Source: Selaginella moellendorffii
Taxonomy: Eukaryota; Plantae; Lycopodiophyta
Direction of reading: 5' to 3'
DNA: 64,000 nucleotides
NCBI RefSeq assembly: GCF_000143415.4
Contig: NW_003314309.1
Span: 359,474-423,473 of the forward strand
The notes under the pieces were generated by a model, which did no database searches, was not told the origin of the DNA, and worked only from the letters and a program-made list of their open reading frames with translations. The position numbers were made by a program, and so were the translations under genes. The stretch's first letter is position 1. Each line of letters opens with the position of its first letter. Below are positions 9,656 to 64,000 of the stretch, one piece after another.

Positions 9656-9941
9656 GAAGAGATTAGAACCATTCAATTGATCCGGCTCCTAAACCAAGCT
9701 CACAACGCTTGAACAACCTCGAAGACAAATAAAAAATTCTCAATGTGTTTATGGAATAAAGAATTTAAGCATTTTTGTTGCTAAACTTGAACGAAGAAAA
9801 AGTTAGGGCTATCTAAACAATTCGTTATCCACGTGGACAACAGCGGTTTGTGAGTTTAAGGTTCTTGGCATCCACGAATCTTGGAAGTTTCAGTAAACCA
9901 CACTTTCACTTGTGCTGTTTGCTCATAGCTTGTTCGCAGCC

Positions 9942-11370
<1,429 letters not shown>

Positions 11371-11461
11371 TAGAAAACAAGTTTTTCCTATATAATGTAT
11401 TTTACCTTTAAACTCCTCAGGCATTTCTAATAGTTAGTCCATTTTCGCTGCTACCAGGGGA

Positions 11462-21885: not shown

Positions 21886-22889
21886 TGTAAGCGACTAAAT
21901 TTTCCATTCTACTTTAGTCACTTAACCACACCTCTGACCACTTGGAGGAGTCTCATTCACAACCTCCATAAGTCCAATCCAGGACTTGGGGCTTGCTAGC
22001 CCCGAGAATGGCATCCATGCCACTCAACATTTGCACTTGGTCCAAGTGCTCCACGTGTCCGATCCCATGACCGACACTCAAAGGTACCACCGACATAGCA
22101 GCCCGTTACGCTAAGGCCATGCCCAATCACCTTTGCCACACTGGTAGTCCAATACCACTTGCATCACCGTCTTGGCTCTCCAAGACTAGGCAAACCATCC
22201 GTGAGTGGTCATCTCAGATCCACTCCTTAGCATCCTTAGGATGCCCACCGACAAGGGGAATAGCCTTCCCCAATATCCCTCTGTCATTCCCCACTAAGTC
22301 CCTTTCTGCCCCTGGCTGTGTTTGCCAACACTGCCATTGGATCGAGACCCACAGGCTCGACCACTAAGTCCCACGGTCCTCTGGGACTTCCTCACCACAC
22401 GACTGTGTCCTTGGTCACTACCCCAGAGGACTGCTCCTCTTCCTTTCCACAGTCTGGGCCTTTGGGACAACATTTCGGAACACCGTGGCCTTACGCAAGC
22501 CACCTGGGTACTCTCCTCGCCTTTCGCCTTTAGGTGCTCTAGCCATGGGCTTAGAGCGAGGTTCCGTTGAGCCACAACAGGTGTCCAAGTAGGTAGTGCC
22601 ACCCACACTTGGACTGGGAGCATCGGCCAGTCGATCTCCCGGGGGAACTAGAGCCGGCTCTCGAACACTTCACCAAGCTACCCCACTTGTCGGTCCGTGT
22701 TCACTCTAGTCTTGGACTTCCCAATGGGCAGCTCATCACCCAACACTGGGTCCGGCCTTCCTGGGCCAAACTGGCCTTTCCTGGCCAAACTGGCTCCACT
22801 GCAGTCCTCCCCCTACTATACTTTTGGAGCTCACCAAACCCCCCAGGGTCTGGGAGACGAACGCTTTGGGCTTTCACCCTCTCAGGCTC

Positions 22890-23517
22890 CGGACTCGGAC
22901 TCGGACTCGGACTCGGACTCGGACTCGGACTCGGACTCGGATTCGGACTCAGACTCGGGCTCGGGCTCGGTCTCAGCCTCGGCCTCGGTCTCGGTCTCGG
23001 TCCCGATCTCGGTCTCGGTCTCGGTCTCGGTCCCGGTCTCGGTCTTGGTCTCGACTTCGGACTCCATCTCGGACTCCATCTCGGACTCCGTCTCGGACTC
23101 CATCTCGGGTCCATCTCGGGTCCATCTCGGACTCCATCTCGGACTCCATCTCGGGTCCATCTCGGACTCCATCTCGGACTCCATCTCGGACTCCATCTCG
23201 GACTCCATTTCGGGTCCATCTCGGGTCCACCTTGGACTCCATCTCGGACTCCATCTCGGGTCCATCTCGGACTCCACTTCGGACTCCAACTCGGACTCCA
23301 TCTCGGGTCCATCTCGGACTCCACTTCGGACTCCAACTCGGACTCCATCTCGGGTCCATCTCGGGTCCATCTCGGACTCCACTTCGGACTCCAACTCGGG
23401 TCCATCTCGGACTCCACTTCGGACTCCAACTCGGGTCCATCTCGGACTCCACTTCGGACTCCAACTCGGGTCCATCTCGGACTCCACTTCGGACTCCAAC
23501 TCGAGTCCATCTCGGAC
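22890..23517. repeat. Tandem array inside the left LTR: (GGACTC)n, (GGTCTC)n, then 12/11-mers and a 35-bp higher-order unit
   Basis: Directly visible: ggactccatctc, gggtccatctc and ggactccacttc-ggactccaactc-gggtccatctc. Confidence 0.95.
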
Positions 23518-26500: not shown

Positions 26501-27833
26501 CCCGTAAGGGTGTATCCGACTTCCCTATGCTATTAAGAAGTCTTGGGTAGCTACCTTCTACCCGTTCAACCAGCTATTTTGCACCTCTTGCTTAGTTGCC
26601 TCATAGTTGTCAAGTCCTACAACTCATTGTTTGGTGCTTTCACACCTCCATCATTATCTGGGTCACCACACTCCAACTGCATGCTCTGCAGCTTAGGCTA
26701 TGCCATTCCCATTTCCATTGGGATTCCTTTGGCAAGGGGTTCTCATGAACCCACCAACATAGCCTCAAGGTATCACACCTTGGCACATTTGGTGTCTCCA
26801 CACCATCGGCTCCACGAGCCTACCTCTATGACACTTCCCCTTCGTGTTTATGTCTTTGCCAAGACCAACACCGCTCTTTCTCATGCCAACCATCCGTTAG
26901 CACTGCACCATAGAGGTCACACACAACTTTATGTCAAAGTTGTTTTCTTCTGGGAACACCTTTCCCATAACTTTAGCATGGCACATTTTGCCATCGATGA
27001 GATACCCTCTGTTCTCATCCTTGGATCCTATGATCCCCCCCCCATCCTTTGTGGGGTACAACACACCACAGTCCAAATGCTTCCATCAGTCCTTTTAGGA
27101 CCATCCGTTGACTCTACTTGAGTCATCCAGCAGTTTTGGACTTGGTTAATCCACAGACCCGTAAGGTCCTACTTGTGAGGCACTAGCTCACTGGAATACA
27201 CTTCTTGCATTCCTGTCCTACTCAAAAGGACTATTTTCACAAGTGTTACTCCGACACTTGATTTTGTTCTCTGGAGGCAACTTTTGCCCCTTAGGACTAC
27301 TTGTCCATGCGATGAGAATACCACTCATCTCTAAGTACACCCCCCAACTCCTTGGGTTGTTCCAGCATTTATTAAAGGTAGCCCCGGCTACCATTTCAAG
27401 GACTTGAGTCCTCTTCCGTATTTGACCTCCCACGGTCATTACCTCTGGTCTCACATTCATGAGCACCAACCTCAACTATATGAGGATAATCTTGTGACTC
27501 CTTTATTGTTTTGGAGTCTCTATCTTTCCCGTGATCCCAACTTTAGTTGTTTACCACAACAACCTTAGCCAATTTGCTGAGACAAATGCTCATCCGGATC
27601 ACATCCTCAACTCAATGAGGAAAACCTTGCACTGTTCCCAAGATCCCAAAGTCGTTCCATTATTGGCCCTTTTCTATCCACCACCTCGTCTACAAGTTCA
27701 CACATGAACTGTAATGGGGAGCCATGTCTTCCCGACTTGCTACTCCTCAAGGATAGGCCCACTCCTCGGACCTTCCGATGCCAACACTAGTGGTGATATA
27801 CTTGAGCACCAATAAAAGTCGGACTAAGGAACA

Positions 27834-27845
27834 GCTCCGATACCA
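27834..27845 (-). promoter_or_regulatory. Primer-binding site complementary to the tRNA-iMet 3' end
   Basis: Plus strand gctccgatacca = minus strand TGGTATCGGAGC, one mismatch to the canonical TGGTATCAGAGC, 3 bp from the LTR end. Confidence 0.85.
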
Positions 27846-28852
27846 AGTTGTAAGCGACTAAATTTTCCATTCTACTTTAGTCACTTAACCACACCTCTGA
27901 CCACTTGGAGGAGTCTCATTCACAACCTCCATAAGTCCAATCCAGGACTTGGGGCTTGCTAGCCCCGAGAATGGCATCCATGCCACTCAACATTTGCACT
28001 TGGTCCAAGTGCTCCACGTGTCCGATCCCATGACCGACACTCAAAGGTACCACCGACATAGCAGCCCGTTACGCTAAGGCCATGCCCAATCACCTTTGCC
28101 ACACTGGTAGTCCAATACCACTTGCATCACCGTCTTGGCTCTCCAAGACTAGGCAAACCATCCGTGAGTGGTCATCTCAGATCCACTCCTTAGCATCCTT
28201 AGGATGCCCACCGACAGTGGGAATAGCCTTCCCCAATATCCCTCTGTCATTCCCCACTAAGTCCCTTTCTGCCCCTGGCTGTGTTTGCCAACACTGCCAT
28301 TGGATCGAGACCCACAGGCTCGACCACTAAGTCCCACGGTCCTCTGGGACTTCCTCACCACACGACTGTGTCCTTGGTCACTACCCCAGAGGACTGCTCC
28401 TCTTCCTTTCCACAGTCTGGGCCTTTGGGACAACATTTCGGAACACCGTGGCCTTACGCAAGCCACCTGGGTACTCTCCTCGCCTTTCGCCTTTAGGTGC
28501 TCTAGCCATGGGCTTAGAGCGAGGTTCCGTTGAGCCACAACAGGTGTCCAAGTAGGTAGTGCCACCCACACTTGGACTGGGAGCATCGGCCAGTCGATCT
28601 CCCGGGGGAACTAGAGCCGGCTCTCGAACACTTCACCAAGCTACCCCACTTGTCGGTCCGTGTTCACTCTAGTCTTGGACTTCCCAATGGGCAGCTCATC
28701 ACCCAACACTGGGTCCGGCCTTCCTGGGCCAAACTGGCCTTTCCTGGCCAAACTGGCTCCACTGCAGTCCTCCCCCTACTATACTTTTGGAGCTCACCAA
28801 ACCCCCCAGGGTCTGGGAGACGAACGCTTTGGGCTTTCACCCTCTCAGGCTC

Positions 28853-29480
28853 CGGACTCGGACTCGGACTCGGACTCGGACTCGGACTCGGACTCGGACT
28901 CGGATTCGGACTCAGACTCGGGCTCGGGCTCGGTCTCAGCCTCGGCCTCGGTCTCGGTCTCGGTCCCGATCTCGGTCTCGGTCTCGGTCTCGGTCCCGGT
29001 CTCGGTCTTGGTCTCGACTTCGGACTCCATCTCGGACTCCATCTCGGACTCCGTCTCGGACTCCATCTCGGGTCCATCTCGGGTCCATCTCGGACTCCAT
29101 CTCGGACTCCATCTCGGGTCCATCTCGGACTCCATCTCGGACTCCATCTCGGACTCCATCTCGGACTCCATTTCGGGTCCATCTCGGGTCCACCTCGGAC
29201 TCCATCTCGGACTCCATCTCGGGTCCATCTCGGACTCCACTTCGGACTCCAACTCGGACTCCATCTCGGGTCCATCTCGGACTCCACTTCGGACTCCAAC
29301 TCGGACTCCATCTCGGGTCCATCTCGGGTCCATCTCGGACTCCACTTCGGACTCCAACTCGGGTCCATCTCGGACTCCACTTCGGACTCCAACTCGGGTC
29401 CATCTCGGACTCCACTTCGGACTCCAACTCGGGTCCATCTCGGACTCCACTTCGGACTCCAACTCGAGTCCATCTCGGAC
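28853..29480. repeat. Second copy of the LTR-internal tandem array
   Basis: Same array offset by 5963 bp; one visible difference (cttgga vs ctcgga). Confidence 0.95.
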
Positions 29481-29716
29481 ACTCCCACGTGTCATGTGTT
29501 GGTCCTTTTGGGTCCCTTTTTGGAGCCTTGCCTTTTGCTCGCTTCGTGCTCGTTCCTCGAGCACTTCATTGGGAGTTCCACTCCCGCTCTTGACTTTTCA
29601 AGTCGGAGCTTTTGGTCCAAACGTGTTACGCTCGTTTGGCTCTCGCTTCGGCCACTACCATGTGGCGCCCTTCCAGCTCCACTTTGGGGCCTAGGGATTT
29701 TGTGTCTCACACTTCA

Positions 29717-32700
29717 GTGACAGCTTGTGGATCTTGCCCGCTAAGCATGTTGCTCATGACTTTGGTGGATGCCCAACACATGGCAATCTGCCAAGGCCAC
29801 CACCACACCCACCACTGTTGCTAGCATTTCCAAGACCTTTGCCACAAGGACCAAACATGGCCACCATACCATATGCAATGGTAAAAGCAGTGCTCTCGGC
29901 AATAGCTGATGACACCCACGTACTTAATGATGCAATCATTTTATTCGCAGCCCAAATGATCTGGCAACCCAGAGAGCACCACAAGGAGGCACCAGCTTAG
30001 GTGCAACCAACTCCCCCAAAGATGGTTGGTGGTGTGGCTGCACTAGTGAGGAGGTCATGGCTCTAGTGCAGAGCCACACATATGCTGCCACCCACTGAGT
30101 GCCAATACTCATGCCACCCCTGCTACAAGGTGAACAACAAGCTTAATTAGGAATAAAGGATGATGAGATGACCACCCTTGGCTCTAGCAACATCCTGCAC
30201 TACCCCTTTGGAAACTAGTAGGGCACATCCCAATGGTAGCTCCTCATCCATGTCAACTATAAAGACTTTCAGTTTGCCCAAGCTTTACCATAGTTCAAGA
30301 ATCTTGTACTTGCCACCTTCAAATACCAAGACTTCTACCTCCAGCCAATGGAACATCAGACATCTTCTACATCATGCTCAAAGAGGAGGGACACTACAGG
30401 GCCCTCCTTGGCCAAGGGTGCTTCCAATACAAGGACCACCTCGCATATGCACAAAGCACCTCATCTACAAACAAAGCACACCTTTGTCACTTTCACGCCT
30501 GTTGTGCCCTCCCACACCTCAATATCACCAAGTGGAATGATGCTACTATATAGGAGATCTTCCACTCAATTGACAACTTCATCCAAATTGATCACAAAAC
30601 ATGGCAGGAAACATGTGAAGTTAGAGTTGAGCAGCCATTACTCTTGGAAGTCCCCACGGGTGAAATAAACCAGCCAACCACCAAAGTCTAGTATTTCAAC
30701 ATCCCCCAAGTGAAAGATATCACCCACACAATGGCACAACCCTAGTCTTCAATATTGCTAGTCAAATGACCACACCACCCCAACAACAACCCATAGCATC
30801 AAGTGGGAGCTCCCCCCTCTGGCCCCACCCCACGATGGAGAAACCCAAAGCTAGCTCCCCACTAGTGCAAGAAGGCCTTATGGAAACAATGTTACATGAA
30901 TTGACAGAATTGGTTGAATGCTAGAAGATGACCATCTCCGAACTTCATGCTAAACATAAGTTACATTTGGTAGAGAAACACAGAAGGGATGCACACCCCA
31001 AGGACCAAGTAACTACCAACAGTCTAGGGCTTCTTAAGGCCGTCCCCACACCCATGGGTGGAGTGGCAGCCTCAACCAATGCAATAGCCACAAACTTGCC
31101 TAGTGAAGGCTATGTAGTAGGATGCGGCTGTAGAAGGCCCCTTGGAAGAATAAACAAGACAAAAGTGGCACCACTGGCCTCAACCAGTGGAATTGTTGAG
31201 CAGCTCCCACCCAAACGGCTATATAAAGCACTTAAGAAGAAGGGTGAAGACTCAATAAATGGCCAATTGATGCTACTAAAGGACTCTAAGACCTCAAACC
31301 CATTACTCATCGAGCATAAGACTTTATCAACACCATAGGAGCACAAGTCCACATGAATAAACACCAGGAATGATGACCTCAACACACCACTACCAATGTT
31401 TCCACTACCAACAATGTAAGATGCAATCAACAAAATCCAAGCTAAAATCTAGCTGGGACAACCAGACCATGTTATCCCCTTGTCACAAGAATCTCAAATC
31501 GGCTATGTGGAACCTCCTCAACACCAAATTGCCCTCTTAACAAAACTCTACTAATGGCCTTGTGAGCACTACATTAGCACTTGAATGCATTGCCATGCAT
31601 CTTAATGGCTAAAAGACCCCAAACCCCCATTGTCAAGACCCCTACAGCTATATAGATTCTATATAACAACCAACCACCCAATCACCAGCACTTTTGTTTT
31701 TGCACTCCCCTTGGGGGGTTATCACAAGTTTTTCTTTTGAGAATCACCTCATTACCATGCAAGCTCCTCAACTATTTATAAAAGAAATCTTTATCATTGT
31801 CTGCAACAAGAAGTTCTTCTAATAGTCTACATCTTTCAACCCCTAATATGTGATAACCTTCAACCCCCACAAAGGAAATACGGCACAACCATGCCCAAAC
31901 AAAAATGCAAAAGGGTGCCCCCACTCGATTAGAACACATGAATCTTGATTGGAGCATGGAATGTTTGAGGGCTGATAATGGATCATGGCACTGGATTAAG
32001 CAGAATTAGCAAGTATGACATCACGATCCTTAGTGAGACATGGGAGAGTCCAACAGCCCATCCCCCACAATACCTTGGGTACATCACATACTCCACATTT
32101 AATATGCATATAGAGGGGACTTGCATATATGTCAAGCACGCCATACACCACTTGGTCCAAGACATCATCGGTGCCCCTATTGCAAACTTCATTGCACTGA
32201 GGCTTCAATTGAACACCACTGAATAATTGATTGTTGTTGGCTGCTACTCCTCACCATCCACAATGTCAATGACAGTCACCTCTTTGATCATTTGGGCATG
32301 ATTGAATTGTGGCACACAAAAGCTACAATTATGATGCTTGGAGATTTCAACGCACAAACGGGATCAAGCCAAGCTTTGGTCAAGCAAGGAGGTGATTTGA
32401 TTGAAGCACCAAGTGACTTTCAATGCACGTATACAAACGACAAGAAAATCCTCCCAAGTGGTGTCAAACTTCTCAACTTCTACATAGCAATGCAGTTGCT
32501 CATCATAAATGGCACTAAATATTGGCCACCCACAAGGGAACACACATGCATGATGTGGAATGGCACTAGCACCAATGACTATGCCTTTATCTCACAAGTT
32601 GCAATTGACACCATAGCCGACTACCACCTCCAGCACTTTCTTGATTCCAAGATCTCAAACCACCACCCACTCAACATCTCACTACTAGTCCAAAGTGGCA

Positions 32701-34061
32701 TTACAAACCCACCTCACATCTCCATTGTCACCATGGATCTTTGGAACCTTAGGGGATAAATGGGGATAACATAGCCACTAAAAGCTCTTTCATTAAGCAA
32801 TTGCCCTTTTTTCAGTTGGCTTAAGAGGAGAGAGATAGGGCGCACTACAATCAGGACATAAGTCTCAAGATCAACCTAATTAAAACACAAATTGAGATCT
32901 TCGGCTTAAAAATAGGCCACACCCTGCTCCACTATCAAAGATAGGAGGTCCTGCAAGTTACCACTTACAAGTACCTTAGTTATCACCTCCACCATCAGCA
33001 AACATGGACCACTAGAGTAGCTCAACACGAAGCTACAGCCAAACAGGCATATTACAACCTACTGAACTCACTTTGCCAAGCAGCCCTCTACCAGTAGGAT
33101 GCAAGAAAGGAGCACTATCAGGCTAAGGTCCACACCATGCTACTATATGGTTGCATTGCCTAGGACCCCAGCCAATCAGCAATGAGCTGGTCCCACCTAG
33201 AAGGGCTTAACTAAACTTTCATTGCTAATGACTTTGGCATCAAACAGAGAGCATCCTATTGCTTGCTATGCATGGAGACTAGACTGCTCTCAATTGAAAT
33301 CCAGGCATGGAAATGCACCATGTAGTTCATACTCTCCACATGGAAGGACACGTTCAACTGCTGTGCTTGGGCAGCTATTGCGGACTTGATCCAACTTGAC
33401 ACCAAAAAGAGCCAGGGATGGTGGAAGGATTGCTGAAAGTGGATGGAATGTCTCGATAGACTACTAGGCCAACTAATCACGACAGTCCCCCCAGCTTGGA
33501 TCAGCCTTGCATTTAAAGGCTAGTTGGCAGGCTCAAATAGGAACTCCTACTTCCAAGACTACCTCAACAACATCAACCCTAGAAGAATCATCAACCCCAG
33601 CATTCACAACTCCACAAGCTACACCACCAGACACATCCTTGCAAAATACCAAACGAGTGTATACTCACTTCATGTTAGTCACATGTAGGTGGGGTAGTTA
33701 TATATAACATGTGACAGGGTCTCTATTCCTGTCTTGCACAGGGGGTAGAGGCAGGCATCTCTAGGCATGACTGGTGTCTGTCTTTGACCTAGCTTGAGCT
33801 CTTCTTCCCAACACTGAACTTCCATGCCCACGACCTCCTAGCATTCATGGGGAACACAACCATGGCAGCAACAATTCCTCTTTTTCTTCATGCTATTGAA
33901 AACCAAAGGGCACTGCTCATTAAAGCAATATGCCCTCACTTCCAAATAGAAACACCTAGCAAATACCTGAATGACACTTCCCTCCCCTCTTCACCTTCTA
34001 CCCAAAAAATCCCATACTCTCACGGGCTAACAGTGACTAAACATATCTATCTATCTATCTA
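29717..34061 (+). mobile_element. Degenerate LINE: ORF1 remainder, APE endonuclease, RT core missing, C-terminal region and (ATCT)n tail
   Basis: APE motifs SWNV-like at ~31960, DITILSETW, MLGDFNAQTG, TSTNDY and SNHHPL (31940-32680). RT-end motif KTQIEIFG...YKYLS at ~32880-32980. Tail atctatctatctatct at ~34045-34061. Confidence 0.85.
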
Positions 34062-43232: not shown

Positions 43233-45833
43233 ATGTGTCGTCTCAATCCCTGCGAGTGCGAGGAAGATAATCCTCTGATTGCCGCCGCCGCGGCAGCGCC
43301 AGCGCCAGCGCCTTCGTCAATCGTGCTCGTGCTTCCCAGCATCAACGATCCTGTCGTCCAGCCCGTGAAAGATTACGAATCGGAGCTCCATCGATGGCCA
43401 ACATCCGCCGAGGTGGGTGTCTCTTGCCATAATATATTTTCTCTTCTTGGATCCCTCTTTCTTTCCTTGGCTGCATGCATTGCTTGCGGCCTTGATCGTG
43501 ATTTTTCCAGGGAATTTTTTCCGTGCGGCGCTGTGCTGGTGTGTGCCTGTGGTACCATCACTCCCACGGCAGCCAGCGTCCATGGCCAGCTAGTTTGCTT
43601 GCTCGCGAGAATCACTGTGTTATTGTATTTTTTTCCCTCGGGATTTGATCTCCGATTTGGCTGTGATTTATATCCTTTGTTTTCATGTGGCATTTCTTTC
43701 CTCGGTCATACGGGCACGTTTGTAAATGTATTGCTTGCTTGCTTGCACCTCTCCTGCTGTGGATCCATCGGTGTCAGTCGCCCGCTATGCTCTGTGACAA
43801 GCTTGGACTGGAGGCCGTGTCGCGTTCGCGTGGATTTGTGTATGATATTGTACCGGCACCGGCACGGTGCCTGTGAGAGCGAGTCAGTCGGTCGCGACGA
43901 GCGGAAGAAAGAATGCGTGCTGTGACTTTGTCATGCGTGTGAGACCGAGGTAGAGAGCAAAGGCACTGATCGATCCTTTCTCGTTTTTTTTCCAAATGGA
44001 GCACAGGTTGTGGAGGAATTGAAGCAGATGAGTGGCATAGCGGGACCCATGGTGGTAATGGGTCTGCTTCTTTATGCCAGGTCTATGATATCCATGCTAT
44101 TTCTAGGCCATCTCGGGAAGATGGAGCTCGCTGGAGGAGCTCTATCCATGGGCTTCGCCAACATCACCGGCTACTCTGTGCTGGCGGGGCTGGCCATGGG
44201 GATGGAGCCGATCTGCGGCCAGGCTTGCGGAGCCAAGAGGTGGCACCTGATGGGCATTACACTCCAGCGGACCATCCTGGTGCTCCTCTGCGTCTGCGTG
44301 CCCATCGCCAGCCTGTGGATCAACATGCAGCGAATTCTGCTGTGGTGCGGCCAGGACGAGGGCATCACGGCAATGGCGGGTACATACATACTCTTCTCGC
44401 TTCCCGACTTGCTGGCGCAGGCAATTCTCAACCCCCTCCGGATTTACCTGCGGACGCAGAACATCACCACGCCGCTCACCTGGTGCTCGGCGCTGGCGCT
44501 GGCGCTGCACGTTCCCATCAACCTGCTGCTGGTGATCCACTTGAAGATGAGGATCCGCGGGGTGGCGCTCTCCGCCGCATTGACCGACTTCAACCTCGTC
44601 ATCTTCCTGGTGGGCTACCTCCGCATCTCGGGCAAATACAAAAGGACGTGGGACGGCTGGTCGCGGGACTCGCTCAAGGACTGGCGCCCGCTTCTCAACC
44701 TGGCCATCCCCAGCTGCATCAGCGTGTGCCTCGAGTGGTGGTGGTACGAGTTCATGATCATCGTGTCGGGGCTGCTGACCAACGCAAAGGCGGCGGTGGC
44801 GTCCATGGGCATCCTCATCCAGACCACGGCGCTCGTCTACATCTTCCCCTCGTCGCTCAGCCTGGCCGTGTCGACGCGGGTGGGCAACGAGCTGGGCGCC
44901 AACCGGCCGGCCAAGGCCCGCATTGCGATGATGGTGGCGCTGGCCTGCGCGGGGGTGGTGGCGGTGCTGGCCATGACGTTCACGACGACGATGCGGCATG
45001 TGTGGGGGGGCATGTTCACCAAGGACGACTCCATCCTCTCGCTCACGTCGCTGGTTCTGCCCATTGTTGGGCTGTGCGAGCTCGGGAACTGTCCGCAGAC
45101 AACTGGCTGTGGGGTCCTCCGGGGCTGCGCGCGGCCATCGACGGGGGCCAACATCAATCTGGGATCCTTCTACTTTGTGGGGATGCCAGTGGCGATGGCT
45201 CTTGGGTTCTTGTTTAATGTCGGGTTCCCTGGGCTCTGGCTGGGCCTGCTGGCGGCACAAGGGACATGTGCGGCCCTCATGATGATTGTGCTGATGCGGA
45301 CGGATTGGGCTCTGCAGGCGGAGAGAGCCAAGCACTTGACGTGCTCGGTGGATGCTGCTCCTGCTGCTGCTTCGAGTCCCAGGAATGACGAGGAGGAGAT
45401 GAGCTGCATCATGAGCAGCAGCAACAGTGGCAGCACCGCCGCCGCCGCCACCGCCACCGCCACCGCCACCATTACGAGCAGCGCCACTAGTGTGCTCAGT
45501 GCTGCTGCCACCAACAACAACAGCAGCAGCAACAGCAATGTTTGCAAGGCAGTGGATCATCGCCACCATGAGACGACTTTTAGAGTTGATGAAGACGAGG
45601 CGGCCGTCATATCGGTGAAGGTGATGCCCCTGGTGGAAAGTGAAAGGGAGCACGGAGACAAGCTTCCTCCCCTTCTTCCTCCTCCCCCGCCTGCCGCTGC
45701 TCCAGCTGCTACTGTTGCTCATCATCATCATAATCATCTTCGTCAACCATATCATCATCAACAACATCATTATCAACAGCAGCACCAGCAGGAAACTACT
45801 GCGGCAGCAGCGGCAACAGCAGCAGCTACTTGA
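43233..45833 (+). CDS. MATE/DTX efflux transporter (ABS3/DTX48-56-like), exons 43233-43412 and 44007-45833
   Basis: A phase-0 GT-AG splice joins RWPTSAE to VVEELKQM. Motifs LLYARSMISMLFLGHLG, FANITGYSVLAGLAMGMEPICGQA, CLEWWWYE, STRVGNELGANRP and CELGNCPQTTGCGVLRG. Long low-complexity C-terminal tail. Confidence 0.93.
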
Positions 45834-52898: not shown

Positions 52899-52984
52899 AA
52901 TCTTTTTGTGAAGGAGATTAATCTCAATTAGTTCAGAAAAGTCTTTTATCTTAAATCATAAATAAAGGTCTATATATATTTCCA

Positions 52985-55740
52985 TGGTATATTAATTAAC
53001 CCAAAAACTTTAAGTTTATATATAGGAGTGAGTGGTCCGAGTTAAAATTAATTTGATGGTTACTAAAATCCTATTGTGCTAATATTAATATGAGTGATGG
53101 TGGATGTAACGGATGGGCTGGGGTTGACTTCACATCATCCCTTTTTTTTAGAATAATGGAAGACCATCAAGGTTCTTTTATGAATGGGCTAAGATTAGAA
53201 AGAATATCAGGAAGAAACATTGATGGATCTATAGATGATGTTAATTGTTTATAATCCCTTTGTACAAAGTGTTTTAATTGTTGCATATACACAATTTCTG
53301 GAGGATCGGTTTGCTAAATGTTGTGCCAAACCTCATAAACTTTGGGTCCAACTTGCCACAACACTTAATACAATCCTTTCCACTGAGCAAAAAACCTTTT
53401 AGATAAACCACATTTCATAACATGGGGAAAATAAACTAACACTAAGTCATTCATTTTGTATTCCACAGATGGATGATGGTGGGAGTTGTAGCACCATTGT
53501 TATCCCCTTTGTATGCAGCCCAAGAGATTGGTAGATTGTGCTCGGGCAAGTGGAAGAATGCTTATCAAATATTGATCCCACGATCTAACATTAGTAGCCT
53601 ATAGCAATAGTGAAAGTAAACTCAACTACATTGATAGTATTGGATCATGATCATATAAGAATTTATATAATGAAGCACTAATGGAACTCTATACCCTTAT
53701 AACATACACATACCAAAGAGATAGCAAATAACCATCATAATCTGAATGTTGAAAGTTCACATATTTCATGATTATTCATTTGAAGGTTCAAATGAGCCAT
53801 TCCATTAAATCATTTGACTATGGATGATAAGCACTCATGAAAGTATGACATTTTCCCAAATGAGTGTATTCCCAAACAAGACATCAAAATGTGAAATGCC
53901 TCAGCTATAAATGTGGAACCATTATCCAAAAGAATCTACTCCAGACAGGAATGTTGGAACACCACTCGATTAAAGAGGAAGTAACTAACATAAGTAGTAG
54001 ATGCGCTAGCAAGAGCACCAACTTCCACTCAACGAGTTAAGTAGTCAAAAGCAATAATGATATACTCACTACCAGCAGTCAGCCATGGAAAAGACTCCAT
54101 TATATCAAATGCCACCAATTCAAACAAATAGGAAATTGCAATTAACTCCAACCATCCTTCCACAACATGAGGGGGAGTATTATAAACTTGGCACTAGACT
54201 TAGTTACACATATACTAGATAACATCATATTGCACCTCTAGCTAATAAAAAGACCTGCGCAACTTCTCGATCACGTGATGATATTCTATATGCCCGCCTA
54301 TGATAGGAGAACTATGGTAGGTCTGAAGAATAAAGAGTAAAGGCACCACAAACCATAAATAATCATTAGGATCCGTCCCTACAAAATAAAAAAGATCATT
54401 CTTAAGGTGATATTGAGAATGTAAATGCCAAAGTGGCAAGTCATCAATAAATGATGCATGATTCTCAAATCTATTGCGAAATTTTCGAATCTATGATTCA
54501 ATCTTTTGAGCCTTGCGAACCTCATCAAGAGAAAGTAAATCTTGCTTTACACTTGTGGACACTAAATGTAAAGTATAACAATTACTAATGGTATGGAATC
54601 CTCGTCCAAAAAATCCATAGATGCAGGAGTAATAGAATCATCAGAAAGATAAGAAGAGAGCGAAGAAGGAAGAGGAACTTGAGAAAGAGTATCAACATTA
54701 GTCATAAAACTCCCTAGATGATGAATAATATCAAAATTATATATCTGAAGTTTCAAAACCCATTAAACAATATGACTAACTAAGTTCTTCCGCTTCAATA
54801 ATGAAGAATTGCAATATGATCACCTTTTAATAATGTCTAAAAACTATATAGACATGCATAAAGTTTCTCAAAACCCCAAATACTACTACTAAACACTCCT
54901 CTTTTGTCATGGAGTAGTTCACCTTTGCTAGTTGTAATGTATAGGTGATATATGCAATAGGATAACATTGACTAAGCATACTTGGGTTTTCTTGCATCAA
55001 CACACCTCTAAGACTGATATCAAAAGCATCCATGAGCAAAATGAAAAGTTAAGTGTAATCAAGATATGCCAAAATTGGAGGAGTCGTTAATAATTCTTTG
55101 AGATCTGTAAATACCCACTCACAATCTATAGACCAAGTGAAAGATAACATTGATGATTTTAGCAATGCTGGTAACGGTGTAATGTGATAAAAAAGATAAT
55201 CAACAAAATGACTGAGATACTACACCAAGAAGTGTTGTATATCATTCACACACTTTGAAGTAGGGAATTTTATAGCAACCATAAGTTTGTTATGATTAAT
55301 TTGTAAACTCTCATGAGAAATGCGATACCCAAGATAAGTCTTGTTTTTAAACCCAAACACGCACTTTAACCACTTTAGCTTTAAACTAACTTCATGTAGT
55401 TAATCCAACATTTTACGAATATCATGGACGTGTTTCTCCCATGTCCCTTTCAAGTGGATCAAAACATCATTAATGAAGTTAAAAGTGACTTTTGGCATAT
55501 CACAAAAAACCTCATCTATCATTTGTTAAAAAGTGGCTAAAGCATTATTCAAAATAAATGGCATCACTAAGAATTCGTACAACTAAATGGTGTATAAAAA
55601 GTAGTTTTAGGAATATCCTTTTCAACTATCGGTATTTACTAGTACTGAGAAGCAAGATTCAACTTGGTGAATTAATGACTTATCCCCAAATGATCCAAGA
55701 GATCAGAAGTGTGAGGAAGAGAGTATACATCTAGGAAAGT
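52985..55740 (-). mobile_element. Old, strongly AT-decayed copy of the Gypsy element (3' LTR remnant, PPT, integrase, RNase H, RT)
   Basis: Colinear with 58790-61180. LTR remnant ~52985-53133 matches 63388-63523. PPT AAAAAAAGGGATGA on the minus strand at ~53134-53148. Confidence 0.9.
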
Positions 55741-58700
55741 AATTATAATAGTGTAATATGTGGATTTTTAATTGAAAATTTAATCCATTCATTCGTTTGC
55801 TCTTTTTTATGATCTTAATTACATTTCTTTTTTATTATACTACTTTATTGTTGATAAAGGAGTGTGCCATTAAAGCCATAGATGTTGCTCTATTATCCTC
55901 AATATTGTTTTTGCTACTATGTCACATATTGATTATGCTTTTTATATCAAAGTTCATAAATAAGGTATTAATTTTTTAATTTACCATCTGATATTTTTTT
56001 CACTCTTTCTTTGACATTTCATTATGCTAGTATATAAGCTCTTCTGAGAAATCATCATACTGAAATTCAAGGATGTTTAACCTTAAATAACTTAAGACCC
56101 TTGGGAAATATAATGCACTCTTATTTATCAACCTTTTATCTCAAGTCGTTCACCCTTTAGTTATTTACATGGAATTTCTTTTTCATCTATAATACTTTCT
56201 TCTTTTAACACATTAATGATCTCTAATTTCATAATTTTCTTTTTTAGTCTAGTGTTAACTTGAGTGTTTTATGCCCTTCTTATATTGATATGGATAATGT
56301 GCTATAGTTGATGTAGAGAATGTGTATATAACTAAAAAATTTGCTTTTGTCTCAATTTTTTACTAATTTTGGTTTTAAATATTCTTTTGTTCCAAGGGTT
56401 ATACCACTTATATTAGTGTTTTGAGTTAAGTGCTATTTTTAATTGTGATTGTTGCTAATTTATAGTTGTTATTGAGGAATTTATTTATTCCCTAAAGAGT
56501 GGGGTTTTTCTTTAATATTTGTATCTCAATTGGTGTTAAGGAGGTTGAGTGGTGTAAATATCTTCCTTATTTAATTTTGGCTTAAGTAATTTATAATAAG
56601 ATATCTAATATTATCTAGTTTTTATATATGGACAGAGTCTCTTATAACATGAGGCCTCTTGTTATCTAAACCTTTAGCATATCATTTTCTTTTTCTTCTT
56701 TGTTTTATCAATACTTTACCCATTTTTTCTTCTTTCACTTTATTTTTTCTTTAATTTTTTCTACTTTCTCCTTTTAGTCTTGATACTTCAAACTTTTTTC
56801 TCTTTGGAGTATGGGATAGATAAGAGTTAGGTATCAATGATGAAGTGAGGATGACTGACAATAGTATTGGAGTAAACACAAATGATATGGATTGTGGAGT
56901 GAGGATGAATATAATGAGTTTGAATGAAATATCTAGCTCCAATGGAGTGAGATCAAGTGCATATGATAATAGAGTGAAGGTTTAGGCTAAAATTAAGCTA
57001 AAAGTATATAGCAAAAGTGCAAGAAGTCAAAACAAAACTAGTGCTTCATAACTTTTTTTTTCTTTTGAAAAGGGGATTATGAAAATATGAAGGACAAATG
57101 GACTATTGAGTCCAATACAATGTCAAATGAAGACAAATGTCATAAGTTTGAGTTAACATTAGTCTCAAAAGCTAACTAGAGGGATAACATATAATAGATT
57201 TTATTATTTGCTGTAGTAGTGTTTTATGGATTGTTGTTACCCTTGAAGTGTTTTGCTTTGGTTCACATGTCTTTGATGTTGGTTCAAACATTTATCACAT
57301 ACACATAGAATTGCAATTAATTCATCAGCATTTCAAAGTTGGTTACTCTTTATGCTATGGCTTTGGGTTTAATTTTGTCATAGGTTAGTGCTTTTATAAA
57401 AGTTTAAGTTTTTGTCATAGTTTATCATCACCCATTAGAAAGTTTTTAATATTTTATCTAACTTACCGTTATCAACTTTTCAGCTTCCAAATGGGAGGAT
57501 GGTGTAAGGTTTATAAATACATATATGTATAATCCTAATGGGTAGATATTCTAATTATAGTAGTGTAGTATATAAATTTTCTAATTAAGAGTGAATTTGG
57601 TCCATCCATTATTGTTTATAAATAGGGGTTCTTACCTCAATTAATATATTTATTCACATATTTGAAGCACTTATATTTATGATATTTTTATTATTTATTG
57701 TTTATTTTTACTTTAATTTTCAAGAGTATTTCTAATACTTCTACAAGATAAAATATTAGAAAATGTGATTAATAAAAAGTAGTTTTAGATATATTTATAG
57801 ATTTAGTAGCATCATTAGTTTAGAGTATTTATATTTAATTATAAGTTGTAGTTGAAGGGATATTAATAATTACCTATCTTGCAGTATCTTAATTTTTGAT
57901 ATTTTATATTTTATGATATCTTTAGAATGAATAAAAATCTAAAAATATTGCAACAAGTGTCACAACAAATATAAAGAATTTATATACTTTTCACCTAATT
58001 ACTCCCTAAATCATAAATATGAGAGACATAAATATTTAGTGGTACATTTGAGAAGCTCCATCAACCAAAATTGGCCATAACCAAGGCCTTATAATCTTTT
58101 TCATATGGTGTTTAATGCTTAAGAATGCAAGATTTTGAATTCAAATACCATAAGTGGAAATTTTTTAATAGGACTATATAATCAAGAATATACTATTGAT
58201 CGCTTAAGATGAGTGTTTTATTTATTGATGGTTAGCAATTATCAAAAAGTTCTAGTAAGGTATATTTAATTATTAATTTTATCAATAATTGTTTCAAGAA
58301 GGATATTTTATACACCAATGTAAAAGACCATTCCTATTATCAATAATACCTTTTATATAAGAAAATGGATAACAATAATCTATATTCCAATAGGAAAATG
58401 AGCTTGAACAAGAACATCTAATTAATATACACTAATCATTACTTCATTAAATATTTCATAAAGCATATTTTGTTAAATTAGCATCAAATTGATCACTATA
58501 CTCATTAAGATTAAGTCTAGAATGGATACTTTTATTTCTTTCATTTAGACATGATGCATCTAAGATGTAATTTGATATAATGGAATAAATTCACAAGTTG
58601 AATAAAAATTGAACATTGAAAATTGATAATTTATGAATTGAGAAATTATATTACAATTGTTTTTAAATACCTACCACATGGATGAAGAGGATCGACATTA

Positions 58701-58785
58701 TCACATTAAGCTCAATAATCATAAATCTGAAAATTATATACATTGTTGTGAAATAGATATCAACTTGGATTTTTCTAGTGGGATT
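55740..58785. mobile_element. Unclassified AT-rich, CpG-depleted degenerate sequence separating the two Gypsy copies
   Basis: Sharp homology breakpoints at both ends; stop-riddled coding-like patches; no family recognised. Confidence 0.4.
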
Positions 58786-58789
58786 TTTC

Positions 58790-61700
58790 TACCAACTTGC
58801 TGCAACACCCGATATGGTCCTTTCCACTACGCAAGGAGCCTTTTAGATAAACCACATACCGTAAGATGGGGAAAACGGACTAACACCAAATCATCCACTT
58901 TGTATTCCGCAGGTGGATGATGATGGGAGTTGTAACACCGTTGTTGTCTCACTTGTACGCGGCCTAAGTGTTCGGCAGACTCTACTCGGACAAGTGGAAG
59001 AATGCTTGTCAAATATTGATCCCATGACCTAGCATCAGGAGCTCGTGGCAATCGCGAAGGTAAACCCAGCTCTGTTGATAATATTGGATCATGACCATAT
59101 AGAAGTTTATATGGTGAAGCACCAACAGAACTCTGCACCCTTGTGACATAGGCATACCGAAGAGACAGCAAATAACCATCTCAATCCGAATGCTGAAAGT
59201 TTACATACTTCGCAATCATCCCTTTGAATGTCTGAATGAGCCGTTCCACCAAACCATCTGATTGTGGATGATAAGCACTCGTAAAAGTGTGGCGTATCCC
59301 CAACCGAGATGTCAAAACATGAAATACCTCAACCATAAATGCAGGACCATTATCTGAAAGAATCCGCTTTGGACAAGAATGCTGGAACACCACTCGATTG
59401 AGGAGGAAGTATCCAACAGCAGTTGCAGAGGCGCTAGCAAGAGCACCAACTTCCACCCAATGAGTCAAGTAGTCAGAAGCAATAATAACATACTCATTGC
59501 CAGCAGTCGATCATGGAAAAGGTCCCATAAGATCAAACGCCACCAACTCAAACGGACGGGAAATTGCAATTGACTCCAACCGTCCTTTCGCAGCACAAGG
59601 GGGAGTATTACGAGCTTGGCACCAAACGCAGCTATGCACATACTGAATAATATCACGTCGCATCTCCGGCCAATAGAAAGACCTGCGCAGCTTCTCGGTG
59701 ACACGACGGTGTCCCATATGCCCACCTAGAACAGGAGAATCATGGTAGGCATGGAGAAACCGTGGAATAAACACCGAAGGCACCACCAACCGTAAATGAT
59801 CATCAGGATCCATCCCCACAAAATAAAGAAGGCCATTTTTAAGGCGATATTGAAAATGCCGGAAAGGCAAGTCATCAGCAAGTGATGCAGGATTCTTAAA
59901 CCCATCTCGAAGCCTTCGAATCCACAGCTCAATCTTTTGAGCCTCACGAACCTCATCAAGAGAAGGTAGATCTTGTTTTGCGCCTTGTGGACACTGAATG
60001 TCAAGGACAGCAACCGCCGACGGCACAGAATCCTCATCTAGAAAATCCACAGATGCTGGAACAATAGGTTCGTTAGAAACATGATAAGTGAGTGGAGAAG
60101 GAAGAGGAGCTCAAGAAAGGGCATCAGCATCAGCCATAGAACTCCCTGGGCGATGAACAACATCGAAATCATATATCTGAAGCTTCAAAGCCCATCGAGC
60201 CATACGACCAACCAAGTTCTTCCGCTTCAATAATGAAGTAACAGCAGCATGGTCACCTTCAAGTAACGTCCAAGAACCATATAGATATGCATGAAGTTTC
60301 TCAAAACCCCAAATTGTTGCTAAACACTTCTTCTCCGTCGTGGAGTAGTTCATCTCCGCTGGTTGTAATGTACGGCTTATGTATGCAATGGGATGGTGCT
60401 GACCAGGCACATTCGAGCTCTCTTGCATCAACACACCTCCAAGACCAATGTCAGAAGCATCCACGCGCAAAATAAAAGGTCGAGTGTAGTCAGGATATGC
60501 CAAAACCGGAGGAGTTGTCAATAGCTCTTTGAGATCCACGAACGCCCACTCACAATCCGGAGACCAGATGAAAGATGACGTTGATGACTTTAGCAACGCT
60601 CGCAATGGTGTAGTGCGATTGGAAAAATGATCCACAAAACGACTGAGATACTGCACCTTACCCAAGAAGCGTTGCACATCATTCACACACTTCGGAGTAG
60701 GGAACTTTAGAACAGCCACAAGTTTGTCAGGATCAACTTGCAAACCCTCACGAGAAATACGATACCCAAGATAAGTTGTGTCTTTGGACCCAAACATGCA
60801 CTTTGACTGCTTCAGCTTTAAACCAACGTCGCGTAGCCGATCCAACACTTTACAAACATCACGAACGTGCTCTTCCCACGTCCCTTCCGAGTGGATCAAG
60901 ACATCATCAATGAAGTCAGCAGTCACCTCTGGCATATCGCAAAGAACCTCGCCCATCATCCGCTGGAAAGTTGCTGAAGCATTGTTCAAACCAATCGGCA
61001 TCACCAAGAACTCGTATAAACCAAATGGTGTACGAAAAGCAGTCTTAGGAATATCTTCTTCGGCCATCGGTACTTGCTAATACCCAGAAACAAGATCTAG
61101 CTTGGTGAACCAATGACTGCGCCCTAGACGATCCAAGAGATCAGCAGTGTGAGGAAGAGGATACACATCTGGAATTGTCACTTCGTTTAACGGACGATAG
61201 TCGATGTAGAAACGAATACTCCCATCAGGCTTCATCACAAGATGAGGTTCACATGTCCAAGGACTCCGCGACTTCCGAATAACACCCTTCTCCAACATCT
61301 CCTTGACGTTTGCACGTAAAATCTTGATCTCCTTGAGTGACCGACGATGAACAAGAACTTTGATTCGACGAGCATCCCCAGTTGGAATGGGATGACATGT
61401 GGCAATCTTGGCCCCAGACGATAGGTCAAATTCAAAGAGATCAGAATACTCCTTCATGAGCTGGTCAACAGCTGCAACACAAAGATTATCGGAGGGATCG
61501 GAAAAGGGAAGAGCAGAACAAGATGAAAACATAGAAGGAAATAGTGGGGGAACAAAAGTAATGGAAGCAGAGGTAGAAGTAGAAGGACGAAGAGGTATGA
61601 AAGTGAGAGGAATGGATGAAATATAAGGAAGTATGAGACAAGGGGGAGAAGCCTCAAAGTCACACCTGGCATGATTGTGCTGCAACCAATCCATACCAAG

Positions 61701-63519
61701 AATGAGATCAAAAGCTTGACTCGGCACCACCTGCAACGACTGTAACTCAAGCTCGAGATCGCCCATACGCACAACCAGGTCTGCCTCATCTCGTGCACAT
61801 ACATGTGTATGGCCGTTGCCATAAAGAATGAAAACTGGATCTGCCGCACGACGCAAGTGTAGATGACAACGTGTGGCAACAGGTCGAGCAATAGAAGATA
61901 AACTCGAACCTGTATCAACCAACACGGAGAGAAGAATAGGAAACCTCTTGTTATAAAAACAAGCTTGGAAAGTAAACACTGGATGAATCGGTGCTGAGTG
62001 AACCCCTTGATGATACTCCCGAAAGAAAGATGGAGGGGTCACTAACTTATTCGCGCAAGATCCCTCCATTACTCGCGCGACTCTTCGTTTCCCGGATGCA
62101 CCTCGGTATCCAAACCTTCCACTGTAGCAGCACCAACGGGACGTTGCTGACACCAAGGTCTCCACCCAAGAAATGGAGGTCGCTGTAAGTAACCAAAGGG
62201 AACGACTCGAGAGATGATCCGTTGGGGTTCAAATATAGAGGGAAAGGGCCTATAAACAAGAGTGCACCCCCTTTTCCAATCGGTTAAGGGTCTTGGGATA
62301 TTTGGGGTTAAGCGTCCTTGGGTTTGAATAGTACTAGGCTGGGTGACCTCCCGGGAAGTCCAAACTCAAGAGCTTACAGTCACCAATCTGAAAAGCACCG
62401 ACAACGCCAATAAGTATGACCAACTTCATCACATGCCCAGCAACAAACATCACGGCCACGACCATGTCCTCGCCCTTGTCCTTGGACTCGAGTAGCAACA
62501 GCATCAACCTCCATAGGAACAGGATCATCACTCATAGGAAGTGGAGCTGAAGGACGTATAGCGAAAAGTGGAAGAAGTGATGTCTCATAATGTTGTGCCA
62601 AGCGAAGAGCATCGTCAAGAGTGGCAGGAGCAAGTGCATGCACAAGTCTGACAAGATCTTGACAAAGTGTTGGCCACAACATTCCTAGCTTGATCCGCTC
62701 CGACATATTGGGCTCCGCACGAAGCAAAAGACTTCGGAAACGAACGCCAAATTGCATCACCGACTCAGATGGCCTTTGGCGAAGACGATGCAATTGTTGG
62801 AAGGCATCGTCACAATCATTAGCATGTCCGAAAGTGCGTTTGAAGACGTATGGAAGAACACTCCAATCCCCACGATCCACACCAATGTACCATTGCAACG
62901 CTGTCCCTTGGAGACACGTGGGAAACTCACGCAAACATTGAGCATCATCCCAAGAATGATATGTGGCAATCACCGTGAAGTGATCGAACCAATGGTACAC
63001 ATCATCCCCAAGATTCCCACGAAAGAACTTTGGCCGATCGCGAGGATTGGCACCAAGAGCAAGAGGAGTTGAACCATGTGCTGTGAATGTCACCATTAAT
63101 TGAGTTTGGTTGTTCAATTGCAAGCGCATAGCATCAAGCAATTGAACCAACTGCTGCTCTAGAGTCAAGGAGGAGATTGCGGATCGGCCATGAAGATGAA
63201 CGAAAAAGAAAAAGCAAAAGAAGAGAAATGACAAAAAGCTGGAAAGAAATGGTAGATCTAGACAATGCAAAATGCTAGATCTAAACTAAAATCCTGAAAG
63301 GAAAGAATAATAAAAGGGACAATCAAAGGTGCCCCTCACCTCCACCAATGTGAGTGCATGGAATATGGAAAGGGAATACAGAAATGTGTATATCAATTAG
63401 CCCAAAAACCTTAGCTTATATACAGGAGCGAGTGGTCTGGATTAAAACCAATCTGATGGCTACCAAAATCTCACTACGCTAATATTAGTATACGGCATCG
63501 TAGTTGTACACTTGGCCCT

Positions 63520-63523
<4 letters not shown>
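58790..63523 (-). mobile_element. Ty3/Gypsy LTR retrotransposon, 3'-truncated, with premature stops
   Basis: gag 62380-63270 with zinc knuckle CWACDEVGHTYWRC. Domains in Gypsy order: PR VLVDTGS, RT FIDDVLIHS, RNase H DAS...ADADALS, integrase HHCC and PQSDGLVER, GPY. Short 5' LTR at 63349-63523. Confidence 0.95.
63332..63347 (-). promoter_or_regulatory. Primer-binding site, tRNA-Ala-like
   Basis: Minus strand TGGTGGAGGTGAGGGG, 1 bp inside the LTR CA end; tRNA-Ala 3' ends read ...CTCCACCA. Confidence 0.6.
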
Positions 63524-63586
<63 letters not shown>

Positions 63587-63771
63587 ATATATATGTATAT
63601 ATGTATATATATATGTATATATGTATATATATATATATGTATATATGTATATATATATGTATATATATATGTATATATGTATATATATATGTATATATGT
63701 ATATATATATGTATATATATATATATGTATATATATATGTATATATGTATGTATATATGTATATATGTATG

Positions 63772-63803
<32 letters not shown>

Positions 63804-64000
63804 TATATGTATATATGTATGTATATATATATATATATGTATATATATGTATATATGTATGTATATATGTATATATGTATATATGTATATATATATGTAT
63901 ATATGTATGTATATATGTATATATGTATGTATATATGTATATATGTATGTGTATATGTATATATGTATGTATATATGTATATGTGTATATGTGTATATAT
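63520..64000. repeat. Compound microsatellite (CA)n-(TA)n-(TATG/TA)n running to the window end
   Basis: Directly visible. Confidence 0.98.

Follow-up and report, generated by a model that had tools for sequence, protein, structure and literature searches.

Nearly one-way cytosine loss in two neighboring Gypsy fragments of Selaginella moellendorffii probably reflects slow decay in silent chromatin and not repeat-induced point mutation

We analyzed a 64,000-nucleotide stretch of the genome of the lycophyte Selaginella moellendorffii (RefSeq assembly GCF_000143415.4, contig NW_003314309.1, positions 359,474 to 423,473; here called the window), in which an older and a younger copy of one Ty3/Gypsy retrotransposon lie close together and differ mainly by C>T and G>A changes. 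An original prediction, made from the sequence alone, had read this pattern as one-way hypermutation resembling the repeat-induced point mutation (RIP) of fungi. We consider it likely, as a single judgment on the whole explanation (the nature of the fragments, a slow site-independent decay, and a link to silent chromatin), that the pair consists of two truncated, same-orientation fragments of one very high-copy family, that the fragments are of different ages, and that they differ through continuous, chromatin- and methylation-linked deamination decay and not through RIP. Under this explanation, cytosines of either strand would turn into thymine slowly and independently at each site, by the same process in both copies, fastest at CG, then at CHG (CAG most), and then at CHH (CAA, CTA, and CAT most; H is any base but G), with a large context-independent component. 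The process would be linked to the silenced and methylated state of the chromatin in repeats and AT-rich blocks and not to repetition as such, and it would run continuously in both haplotypes, the "old" copy having had about 4 to 5 times more exposure than the "young" one. With few deletions, old repeats would persist and drift into CpG-free deserts of 20 to 30% GC. The chemical cause would probably be spontaneous deamination combined with inefficient repair in silent chromatin.

The overlap of the two copies (53348-55737 in the older and 58792-61174 in the younger) showed 77.2% identity (blastn). A global alignment of this overlap (MAFFT) had 2366 aligned columns and 508 mismatches, which, read from the younger to the older copy, comprised 190 C>T, 162 G>A, 46 T>C, 46 A>G, and 64 transversions (transition/transversion ratio [Ts/Tv], 6.9), together with 8 indel events covering 42 columns. 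When purines and pyrimidines were each collapsed into one letter, the identity of the two copies rose to 95.6%. The original prediction was based on a hand count over 112 bp (60114-60225 against 54682-54793, ungapped) that gave 22 differences, 21 of them C>T or G>A and 1 a transversion; our recount gave the identical result, consisting of 12 C>T, 9 G>A, and 1 C>A, with no change in the opposite direction. The contexts of the 21 transitions, estimated as about 5 CpG, about 3 CHG, and the rest CHH, were 5 CG, 3 CHG, and 13 CHH. The expectation that the rest of the 2.4-kb overlap would also consist mostly of C>T and G>A changes with few indels was likewise correct, since these changes account for 352 of the 508 mismatches. 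The statement that none go the other way is true of the 112-bp sample, and nearly true of the overlap once the changes are polarized, but it does not hold for the raw overlap, where 92 reverse transitions give a forward-to-reverse ratio of 3.8:1. Among the 100-bp bins of the overlap, none is more one-sided than this sample (P value = 0.008 for a single bin, given the overall ratio, with about 24 bins).

We polarized the changes in two independent ways, by per-site read tallies in a small sequencing run (X4) whose contigs cover essentially the younger copy alone and by comparison with distant Gypsy protein outgroups (n = 40). In run X4, the younger copy carried T or A where the family has C or G at 94 places (T>C 58, A>G 36) and C or G where the family has T or A at 19 places (C>T 10, G>A 9), with 10 transversions. 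Against the 40 outgroup proteins, 62 conserved codons were derived in the older copy and 5 in the younger copy, and the changes inside the 62 codons comprised 72 C>T or G>A, 6 T>C or A>G, and 6 transversions. Together, the tallies and the outgroups reproduce the 92 reverse differences as about 64 C>T changes of the younger copy at sites kept by the older one plus about 29 true T>C changes of the older copy. Most of the reverse differences are thus the younger copy's own C>T changes, and both copies therefore decay nearly one-way, the C>T load of the older copy being about 4 times that of the younger.

The loss per site in the older copy was 0.495 at CG, 0.419 at CHG, and 0.255 at CHH, and the younger copy showed the same ranking at a lower dose (0.23, 0.17, and 0.10, respectively). 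By dinucleotide, the older copy lost CpG most (0.50), followed by CpA (0.33), CpT (0.28), and CpC (0.22); by trinucleotide, the values ran from CGG (0.69), CGA (0.59), CAG (0.52), and CAA (0.39) down to CAC (0.16). This order (CGG and CGA, then CAG, then CAA and CCG at similar levels, then CTA and CAT, and finally CCA, CCC, and CAC) is the ranking of plant methylation. Moreover, CpG and CHG depletion deepened with age, as expected of methylation-driven decay, and the observed/expected ratio (o/e) of CWG (W is A or T) fell from 0.95 in the younger copy to 0.46 in the older copy and 0.27 in the AT block. CHH sites supplied 186 of the 352 C>T changes (53%), and in the least affected contexts (CAC, CCA, and CCC) 16 to 18% of the cytosines were lost, compared with transversions at 1.8 to 3.8% per site.

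A second assembled haplotype (GL377578.1), found through an allelic protein of the MATE family and a neighboring open reading frame (ORF) and colinear with window positions 32852-52928, allowed repeats and open DNA to be compared within the same genome. Over 9.1 kb of GC-normal intergenic DNA, the haplotypes differed by 68 transitions and 60 transversions (Ts/Tv, 1.1), and C/T differences per C site were 2.9% at CG, 1.5% at CHG, and 1.4% at CHH. The repeat at 32852-33675, which is CpG depleted and is probably what remains of a long interspersed nuclear element (LINE), had 84 transitions and 15 transversions (Ts/Tv, 5.6), with C/T differences of 50% at CG, 36% at CHG, and 15.7% at CHH. The other haplotype also contains a part of the AT-rich block between the two Gypsy fragments (55736-57415), at 11 to 12% divergence, and there 3 of 4 CG sites, 50% of CHG sites, and 26% of CHH sites differed. 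The bias is thus missing from the adjacent unmethylated DNA (Ts/Tv of 1.1 versus 5.6 in the repeat and 6.9 in the Gypsy pair). Cytosine loss in the repeats and the AT block exceeded that in neighboring DNA 11- to 33-fold in raw terms and about 4- to 7-fold after normalization to transversions (1.8 to 3.3% there versus 0.66% in GC-normal intergenic DNA), and CHH differences by themselves were 11 to 19 times higher in repeats than in intergenic DNA. The predicted strong acceleration of cytosine loss in all contexts was therefore borne out (CHH 16 to 26%, CHG 36 to 50%, and CG 50 to 75% versus 1.4, 1.5, and 2.9%). Furthermore, the differences were symmetric between the haplotypes (41 versus 43 and 44 versus 46) and clustered neither by haplotype nor by strand. 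The decay is therefore ongoing, independent in each allele, and tied to the kind of DNA and not to its copy number.

The arrangement of the changes along the overlap was compared with what RIP leaves behind. The 352 events formed 171 same-strand runs, where 168.9 ± 9 were expected (longest run, 8), and their dispersion across bins showed no overdispersion (χ2 = 17.4, 23 degrees of freedom); the allelic differences were likewise unclustered, and strand-coherent tracts were absent. RIP is indicated when TpA/ApT exceeds 0.89 while (CpA+TpG)/(ApC+GpT) stays below 1.03; these indices were 0.80 and 1.38 in the older copy and 0.91 to 0.96 and 1.17 to 1.32 in the AT blocks, so that none of these sequences gave a RIP signal. 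The substitution spectra by context, proposed as a check of the prediction, thus gave CG > CHG > CHH with negative RIP indices. The ratio of C>T changes to transversions was 352:54 in the older copy (6.5:1) and 94:10 in the younger copy (9.4:1), a difference that was not significant (Fisher test, P value = 0.41). The C>T load is proportional to transversions in both copies and therefore behaves like a clock, and we saw no episodic burst out of proportion to other substitutions. This second proposed check, of the load against transversions and indels, accordingly speaks against the RIP part of the prediction. In the read comparison, which took in contigs at least 80% alike, summed contig depth was about 6e5 to 1e6 over the younger copy and about 1e2 to 4e2 over most of the AT block. 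Of the 49,397 aligned contigs, 40% were at least 95% alike, and only 108 C/G places had a T/A share of at least 20%. Most copies of the family are thus undecayed, which is not what a process triggered by duplication and sparing unique DNA would leave, and the AT block, which lies at near single-copy depth in most bins (a few are moderately repeated), decays at least as fast.

With these results, an active RIP-like system that senses duplicated DNA and struck the older copy in one or a few episodes is very improbable. Such a system could account for the high Ts/Tv, the nearly one-way changes after polarization, the majority of changes outside CG and CHG, and the order CA > CT > CC at non-CG sites (0.33, 0.28, and 0.22), and S. 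moellendorffii reportedly has an orphan OTT_1508-like deaminase (PMC3239186), although as a lead to a mutating enzyme it is only speculative. It fits poorly with the random order of strands and the lack of spatial clustering, with CpG being hit most while (CpA+TpG)/(ApC+GpT) stays at 1.3 to 1.4, with a load that differs 4-fold between the copies and scales with transversions and indels, with the very many near-identical family copies left unmutated, and with the decay, in both haplotypes, of an AT block at mostly near single-copy depth; the active repeat-mutating system of the original prediction is accordingly rejected. Features that the prediction had itself named as counting against it are in part present: raw reverse transitions are appreciable, the load scales with transversions, and CG and CHG are enriched per site. 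Still less credible is an origin of the differences before insertion, either as inherited subfamily differences or through editing of cDNA (APOBEC-like) or of RNA prior to integration. Of the 12 sites listed as having C or G in the family and T or A in the younger copy, 5 have T or A in the older copy as well, which may hint at a shared sublineage. The near-equal and interleaved C>T (190) and G>A (162) changes exclude single-strand editing of RNA or cDNA, however, and the older copy carries at least 10 stop codons and the 62 changed codons that are conserved across distant Gypsy proteins; in addition, the allelic repeats show an identical spectrum that arose independently in both haplotypes.

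High-copy repeats of S. moellendorffii are methylated (PMC2442089), and its genes are nearly unmethylated (mCG 1.2%, mCHG 0.65%, and mCHH 0.14%; PMC5410703, supplementary file 13), with mCHG at about the level of mCG (PMC5410703). Two sequencing runs of 2010 (X10 and X11) behave like bisulfite-converted libraries. In them, the 11 best-supported fully converted positions of the family, drawn from the best 40 of 440 rows, were all CHH (chance probability, about 0.01, given 67% CHH), and in the unaligned contig ends C was kept only in CG or CAG. CHH methylation is also reportedly low in S. moellendorffii (Zemach et al. 2010). Dense CHH methylation, which the original prediction had offered as one possible cause, is thus not supported by these runs.

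Several observations weigh against decay linked to methylation and silent chromatin. The loss at CG is only about 2.3-fold faster than that at CHH after correction for saturation. CHH sites supply more than half of the C>T changes, yet CHH positions of the family are fully converted, and hence unmethylated, in the bisulfite-like runs; the methylation of individual cytosines therefore cannot explain the large context-independent component, and only for the CHH component does ordinary deamination of 5-methylcytosine fall short of a full explanation. The bisulfite-like evidence itself comes from a few best-supported rows. Transversions, too, are 3- to 5-fold higher in the repeat and the AT block, the contrast between haplotypes could come partly from constraint on the genic side or from deeper coalescence, and the acceleration is larger than that reported for angiosperm transposable elements (TEs). 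Finally, no TE protein remnant was found in the AT blocks, whose content leaves a TE origin unproven.

We also weighed the possibility that the main driver does not depend on whether a given cytosine is methylated, which would make the decay of Selaginella repeats mechanistically distinct from the angiosperm pattern; we regard this as unlikely. Its variants are a deficit in the repair of uracil or T:G mismatches in heterochromatin, a nonprocessive deaminase acting on silent chromatin, and a transient methylation of all contexts that is limited to reproductive cells and would escape bisulfite data from vegetative tissue. It would accommodate the losses at CAC, CCA, and CCC, the 11- to 19-fold excess of CHH differences in repeats, the unmethylated reading of CHH positions, and the small lead (about 2-fold) of CG over CHH. 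The ranking nevertheless follows plant methylation down to CWA above other CHH and CAG above CCG, so that methylation contributes; moreover, the evidence from the bisulfite-like runs is limited and biased, the same blocks also have more transversions, and plants normally show a general bias toward C>T even where cytosines are unmethylated, as in the mutation-accumulation spectra of Arabidopsis. Only tentatively, then, might one speak of a silent-chromatin C-to-T process that is largely independent of methylation and that runs, in all contexts, about 4- to 7-fold (normalized) to 11- to 33-fold (raw) above adjacent open DNA. The same low expectation covers, taken together, its candidate causes, namely, a lineage-specific repair deficit, all-context methylation in reproductive cells, and a chromatin-targeted deaminase. 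If it were true, methylation-independent cytosine loss, rather than deletion, would be what neutralizes repeats in the small Selaginella genome.

The continuous, chromatin- and methylation-linked decay that we prefer would also account for the AT-rich blocks of the window. Composition changes stepwise from the younger copy (GC 0.46, CpG o/e 0.76) through the older copy (GC 0.34, CpG o/e 0.34) to the blocks at 55.7-58.8 kb (GC 0.26, CpG o/e 0.10) and 12.5-21 kb (GC 0.28, CpG o/e 0.07). With a polarized per-site ratio of C>T to T>C of about 14:1, GC would be expected to settle well below 20% at equilibrium, and the composition of the AT blocks therefore agrees with their being what this decay leaves in the end. 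Searches for what they once contained gave little: tblastn with 120 homologues and the ORFs of the younger copy found no remnant of the reverse transcriptase or integrase of this family or of another Gypsy element outside the two fragments; the 20 longest stop-free pieces of the blocks at 12.5-21, 34-35, 36.3-37.7, and 55.7-58.8 kb had only chance-level Pfam matches; and a self-comparison in purine/pyrimidine-collapsed letters, which looks for homology erased by transitions, returned only the known pair, a 106-bp end of a long terminal repeat (LTR), and microsatellites. The original prediction that cytosine loss explains the AT-rich blocks thus fits the graded composition, from which we infer that they are its end products. 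Within the block at 12.5-21 kb lies a 117-bp tandem repeat (15168-15603; 3.7 copies, 79% matches), whose units are 92% alike in purine/pyrimidine coding and hence differ mainly by transitions.

The two fragments and the sequences around them are listed in Table 1. Retrotrans_gag, gag-asp_proteas, RVT_1, RT_RNaseH_2, and Integrase_H2C2 follow one another in the order of a Ty3/Gypsy element (Metaviridae) on the minus strand. The younger fragment (GC 0.46) is truncated in 3' at 58792 and the older one (GC 0.34, CpG o/e 0.34) in 5' at 55737, and the at least 10 stop codons of the older copy lie in its frames for reverse transcriptase-RNase H and integrase (tblastn with the ORFs of the younger copy). 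The LTR sequence that can be recognized in each truncated fragment is limited to a 106-bp end (52987-53092, matching 63388-63492). Contigs of other family copies run on past 58792, and their continuation matches 53318-53347 of the older copy, which is the complementary piece to the younger one, reaching from the reverse transcriptase (55737) down to the 3' LTR end (about 52985). The closest protein relatives of the family are only 45 to 50% identical, none close enough for fetching other copies as DNA. Each of six very small runs of 2020 (X4 to X9, with contigs totaling about 3 Mb per run) contains about 30% of the words of the younger copy, as would be expected if few sequences in the genome were more abundant than this family.

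Table 1. Features of the Gypsy pair and its surroundings (window coordinates)
Feature	Position	Strand	Content or remark
Older Ty3/Gypsy fragment	52985..55737	-	Reverse transcriptase (RT), RNase H, integrase, 3' region, LTR end
Younger Ty3/Gypsy fragment	58792..63492	-	LTR end, leader, gag, protease, RT-RNase H, integrase N-terminus
gag, younger copy	62380-63270	-	Pfam Retrotrans_gag
Protease, younger copy	61077-62165	-	Pfam gag-asp_proteas
RT-RNase H, younger copy	60111-61067	-	Pfam RVT_1, RT_RNaseH_2
Integrase N-terminus (zinc-binding), younger copy	59511-60050	-	Pfam Integrase_H2C2
112-bp sample in younger copy	60114..60225	.	Partner in older copy 54682-54793; recounted exactly
AT-rich block separating the fragments	55738..58791	.	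GC 0.26, CpG o/e 0.10, CCG o/e 0.08
(CA)n/(TA)n/(TG-TA)n compound microsatellite	63520..64000	.	Sits at the expected place of the younger copy's 5' LTR body
Intronless MATE ORF	44010-45833		100% identical to S. moellendorffii protein DETOXIFICATION 48

The older fragment (window positions 52929-55735) is absent from GL377578.1 and is thus an insertion/deletion polymorphism; a (CT)14 microsatellite occupies its junction in the other haplotype (L001 19684-19764), between the same host bases. The place of the younger copy is masked there by a 100-N assembly gap beside a similar compound microsatellite (L002 12026-12408), which directly follows the AT block. One might suppose that the older fragment was copied as DNA, for example, as break filler, from a copy elsewhere that had already decayed, in which case its load would be uninformative about this locus. 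The fragment does sit exactly between the host bases that flank (CT)14 in the other haplotype, and its junction is clean although it is 5' truncated. We nonetheless find this origin rather improbable, since the load of the fragment exceeds the divergence per lineage of the allelic AT block beside it by a factor of only about 1.4 to 1.9 (CHH about 0.25 versus about 0.13; transversions about 2.3% versus about 1.6%) and decay in place since about the split of the haplotypes suffices; moreover, it would alter the history of the fragment and leave the mutational mechanism as it is.

Divergence between the haplotypes is uneven and tracks composition, at 1.2% over 14.7 kb of genic DNA, 2.7 to 6.1% in several AT-rich pieces, and 11 to 12% in the CpG-depleted repeat and the AT block, where more than cytosine loss differs. 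A DNA run of 2024 (X1, record 2) holds a third, intermediate allele of the AT block over 56031-56900, which is 6% from the window (52 differences in 869 nucleotides, mostly transitions); the stretch is hypervariable.

The window contains further repeats and genes. A very young LTR element at 21886-29711 has 1863-bp LTRs (21886-23748 and 27849-29711) that are 99.84% identical, and their 3 mismatches were uninformative as a second substitution spectrum. Each LTR holds a minisatellite of about 600 bp with a 12-bp unit (22890-23517 and 28853-29480), and the 4.1-kb interior has no domain detectable with Pfam, so that the element is probably nonautonomous; an LTR related to it lies past the microsatellite in the other haplotype (L002 12408-12661). 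The region 30000-34000, whose GC is normal (0.45) but whose CpG o/e is 0.15 and CCG o/e 0.13, shows a strong strand skew (GC skew -0.2, AT skew +0.19) and, at 31969-32223, weak similarity to a LINE-type endonuclease (E = 0.0034); it probably represents a non-LTR element that has decayed. A β-tubulin gene with three exons spans about 9939-11370 on the plus strand (GC at third codon positions 0.89 in the true frame), and its GC-rich codon use accounts for a long ORF that runs the other way (10615-11424).

These results remove a tempting reading of RIP in a land plant, where such a process would be remarkable. They suggest that the retrotransposons of this lycophyte are not deleted but eroded into CpG-free, AT-rich deserts, while adjoining genes keep their composition. 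The two assembled haplotypes provide a control within the genome, with a Ts/Tv of 1.1 in open DNA versus 5.6 to 6.9 in repeats. For the dating of LTR elements in S. moellendorffii, the results imply that standard clocks would overestimate the age of repeats, and for repeat annotation, that old elements become invisible to homology searches. More generally, they bear on how much of the decay of plant TEs comes from the methylation of individual cytosines and how much from chromatin state.

In the literature that we searched for RIP-like mutation and for the deamination of TEs in Selaginella, we came across no description of such a pattern. With fungal RIP (Neurospora and Leptosphaeria), the window shares a nearly exclusive C:G-to-T:A change on both strands overall, AT-rich blocks beside GC-normal genes, and little disruption of frames by indels. 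It differs in showing no dependence on repetition, no strand-coherent tracts, a preference for CpG over CpA (CpA is preferred in Neurospora), a negative RIP index, and a load proportional to transversions that accrues continuously and independently in each allele and not in episodes. Hypermutation of cDNA by APOBEC3-type enzymes also yields retroelement copies with many G>A or C>T changes, but it is strand specific and clustered, whereas the changes here are symmetric and interleaved. The closest likeness is to the decay described in the GC-poor genome of Welwitschia mirabilis, where deamination drives the GC loss of LTR elements (PMC8275611), and in Brachypodium, where the GC of LTR elements falls with copy age (PMC7497039). 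In these plants, as here, the GC of silenced LTR elements drops with age as a result of C>T changes, AT content is higher in old or incomplete copies than in intact ones, genes remain rich in GC and CpG, and depletion affects CpG and CHG first. What sets the S. moellendorffii window apart is the large context-independent part, in that CHH sites account for 53% of the changes and the lead of CG over CHH is only about 2-fold; the 11- to 33-fold contrast with adjacent unmethylated DNA between haplotypes; a small genome (about 100 Mb) that keeps indel-poor fossils; and CHH sites that read as unmethylated in the bisulfite-like runs, in contrast to the high CHH methylation of Welwitschia.

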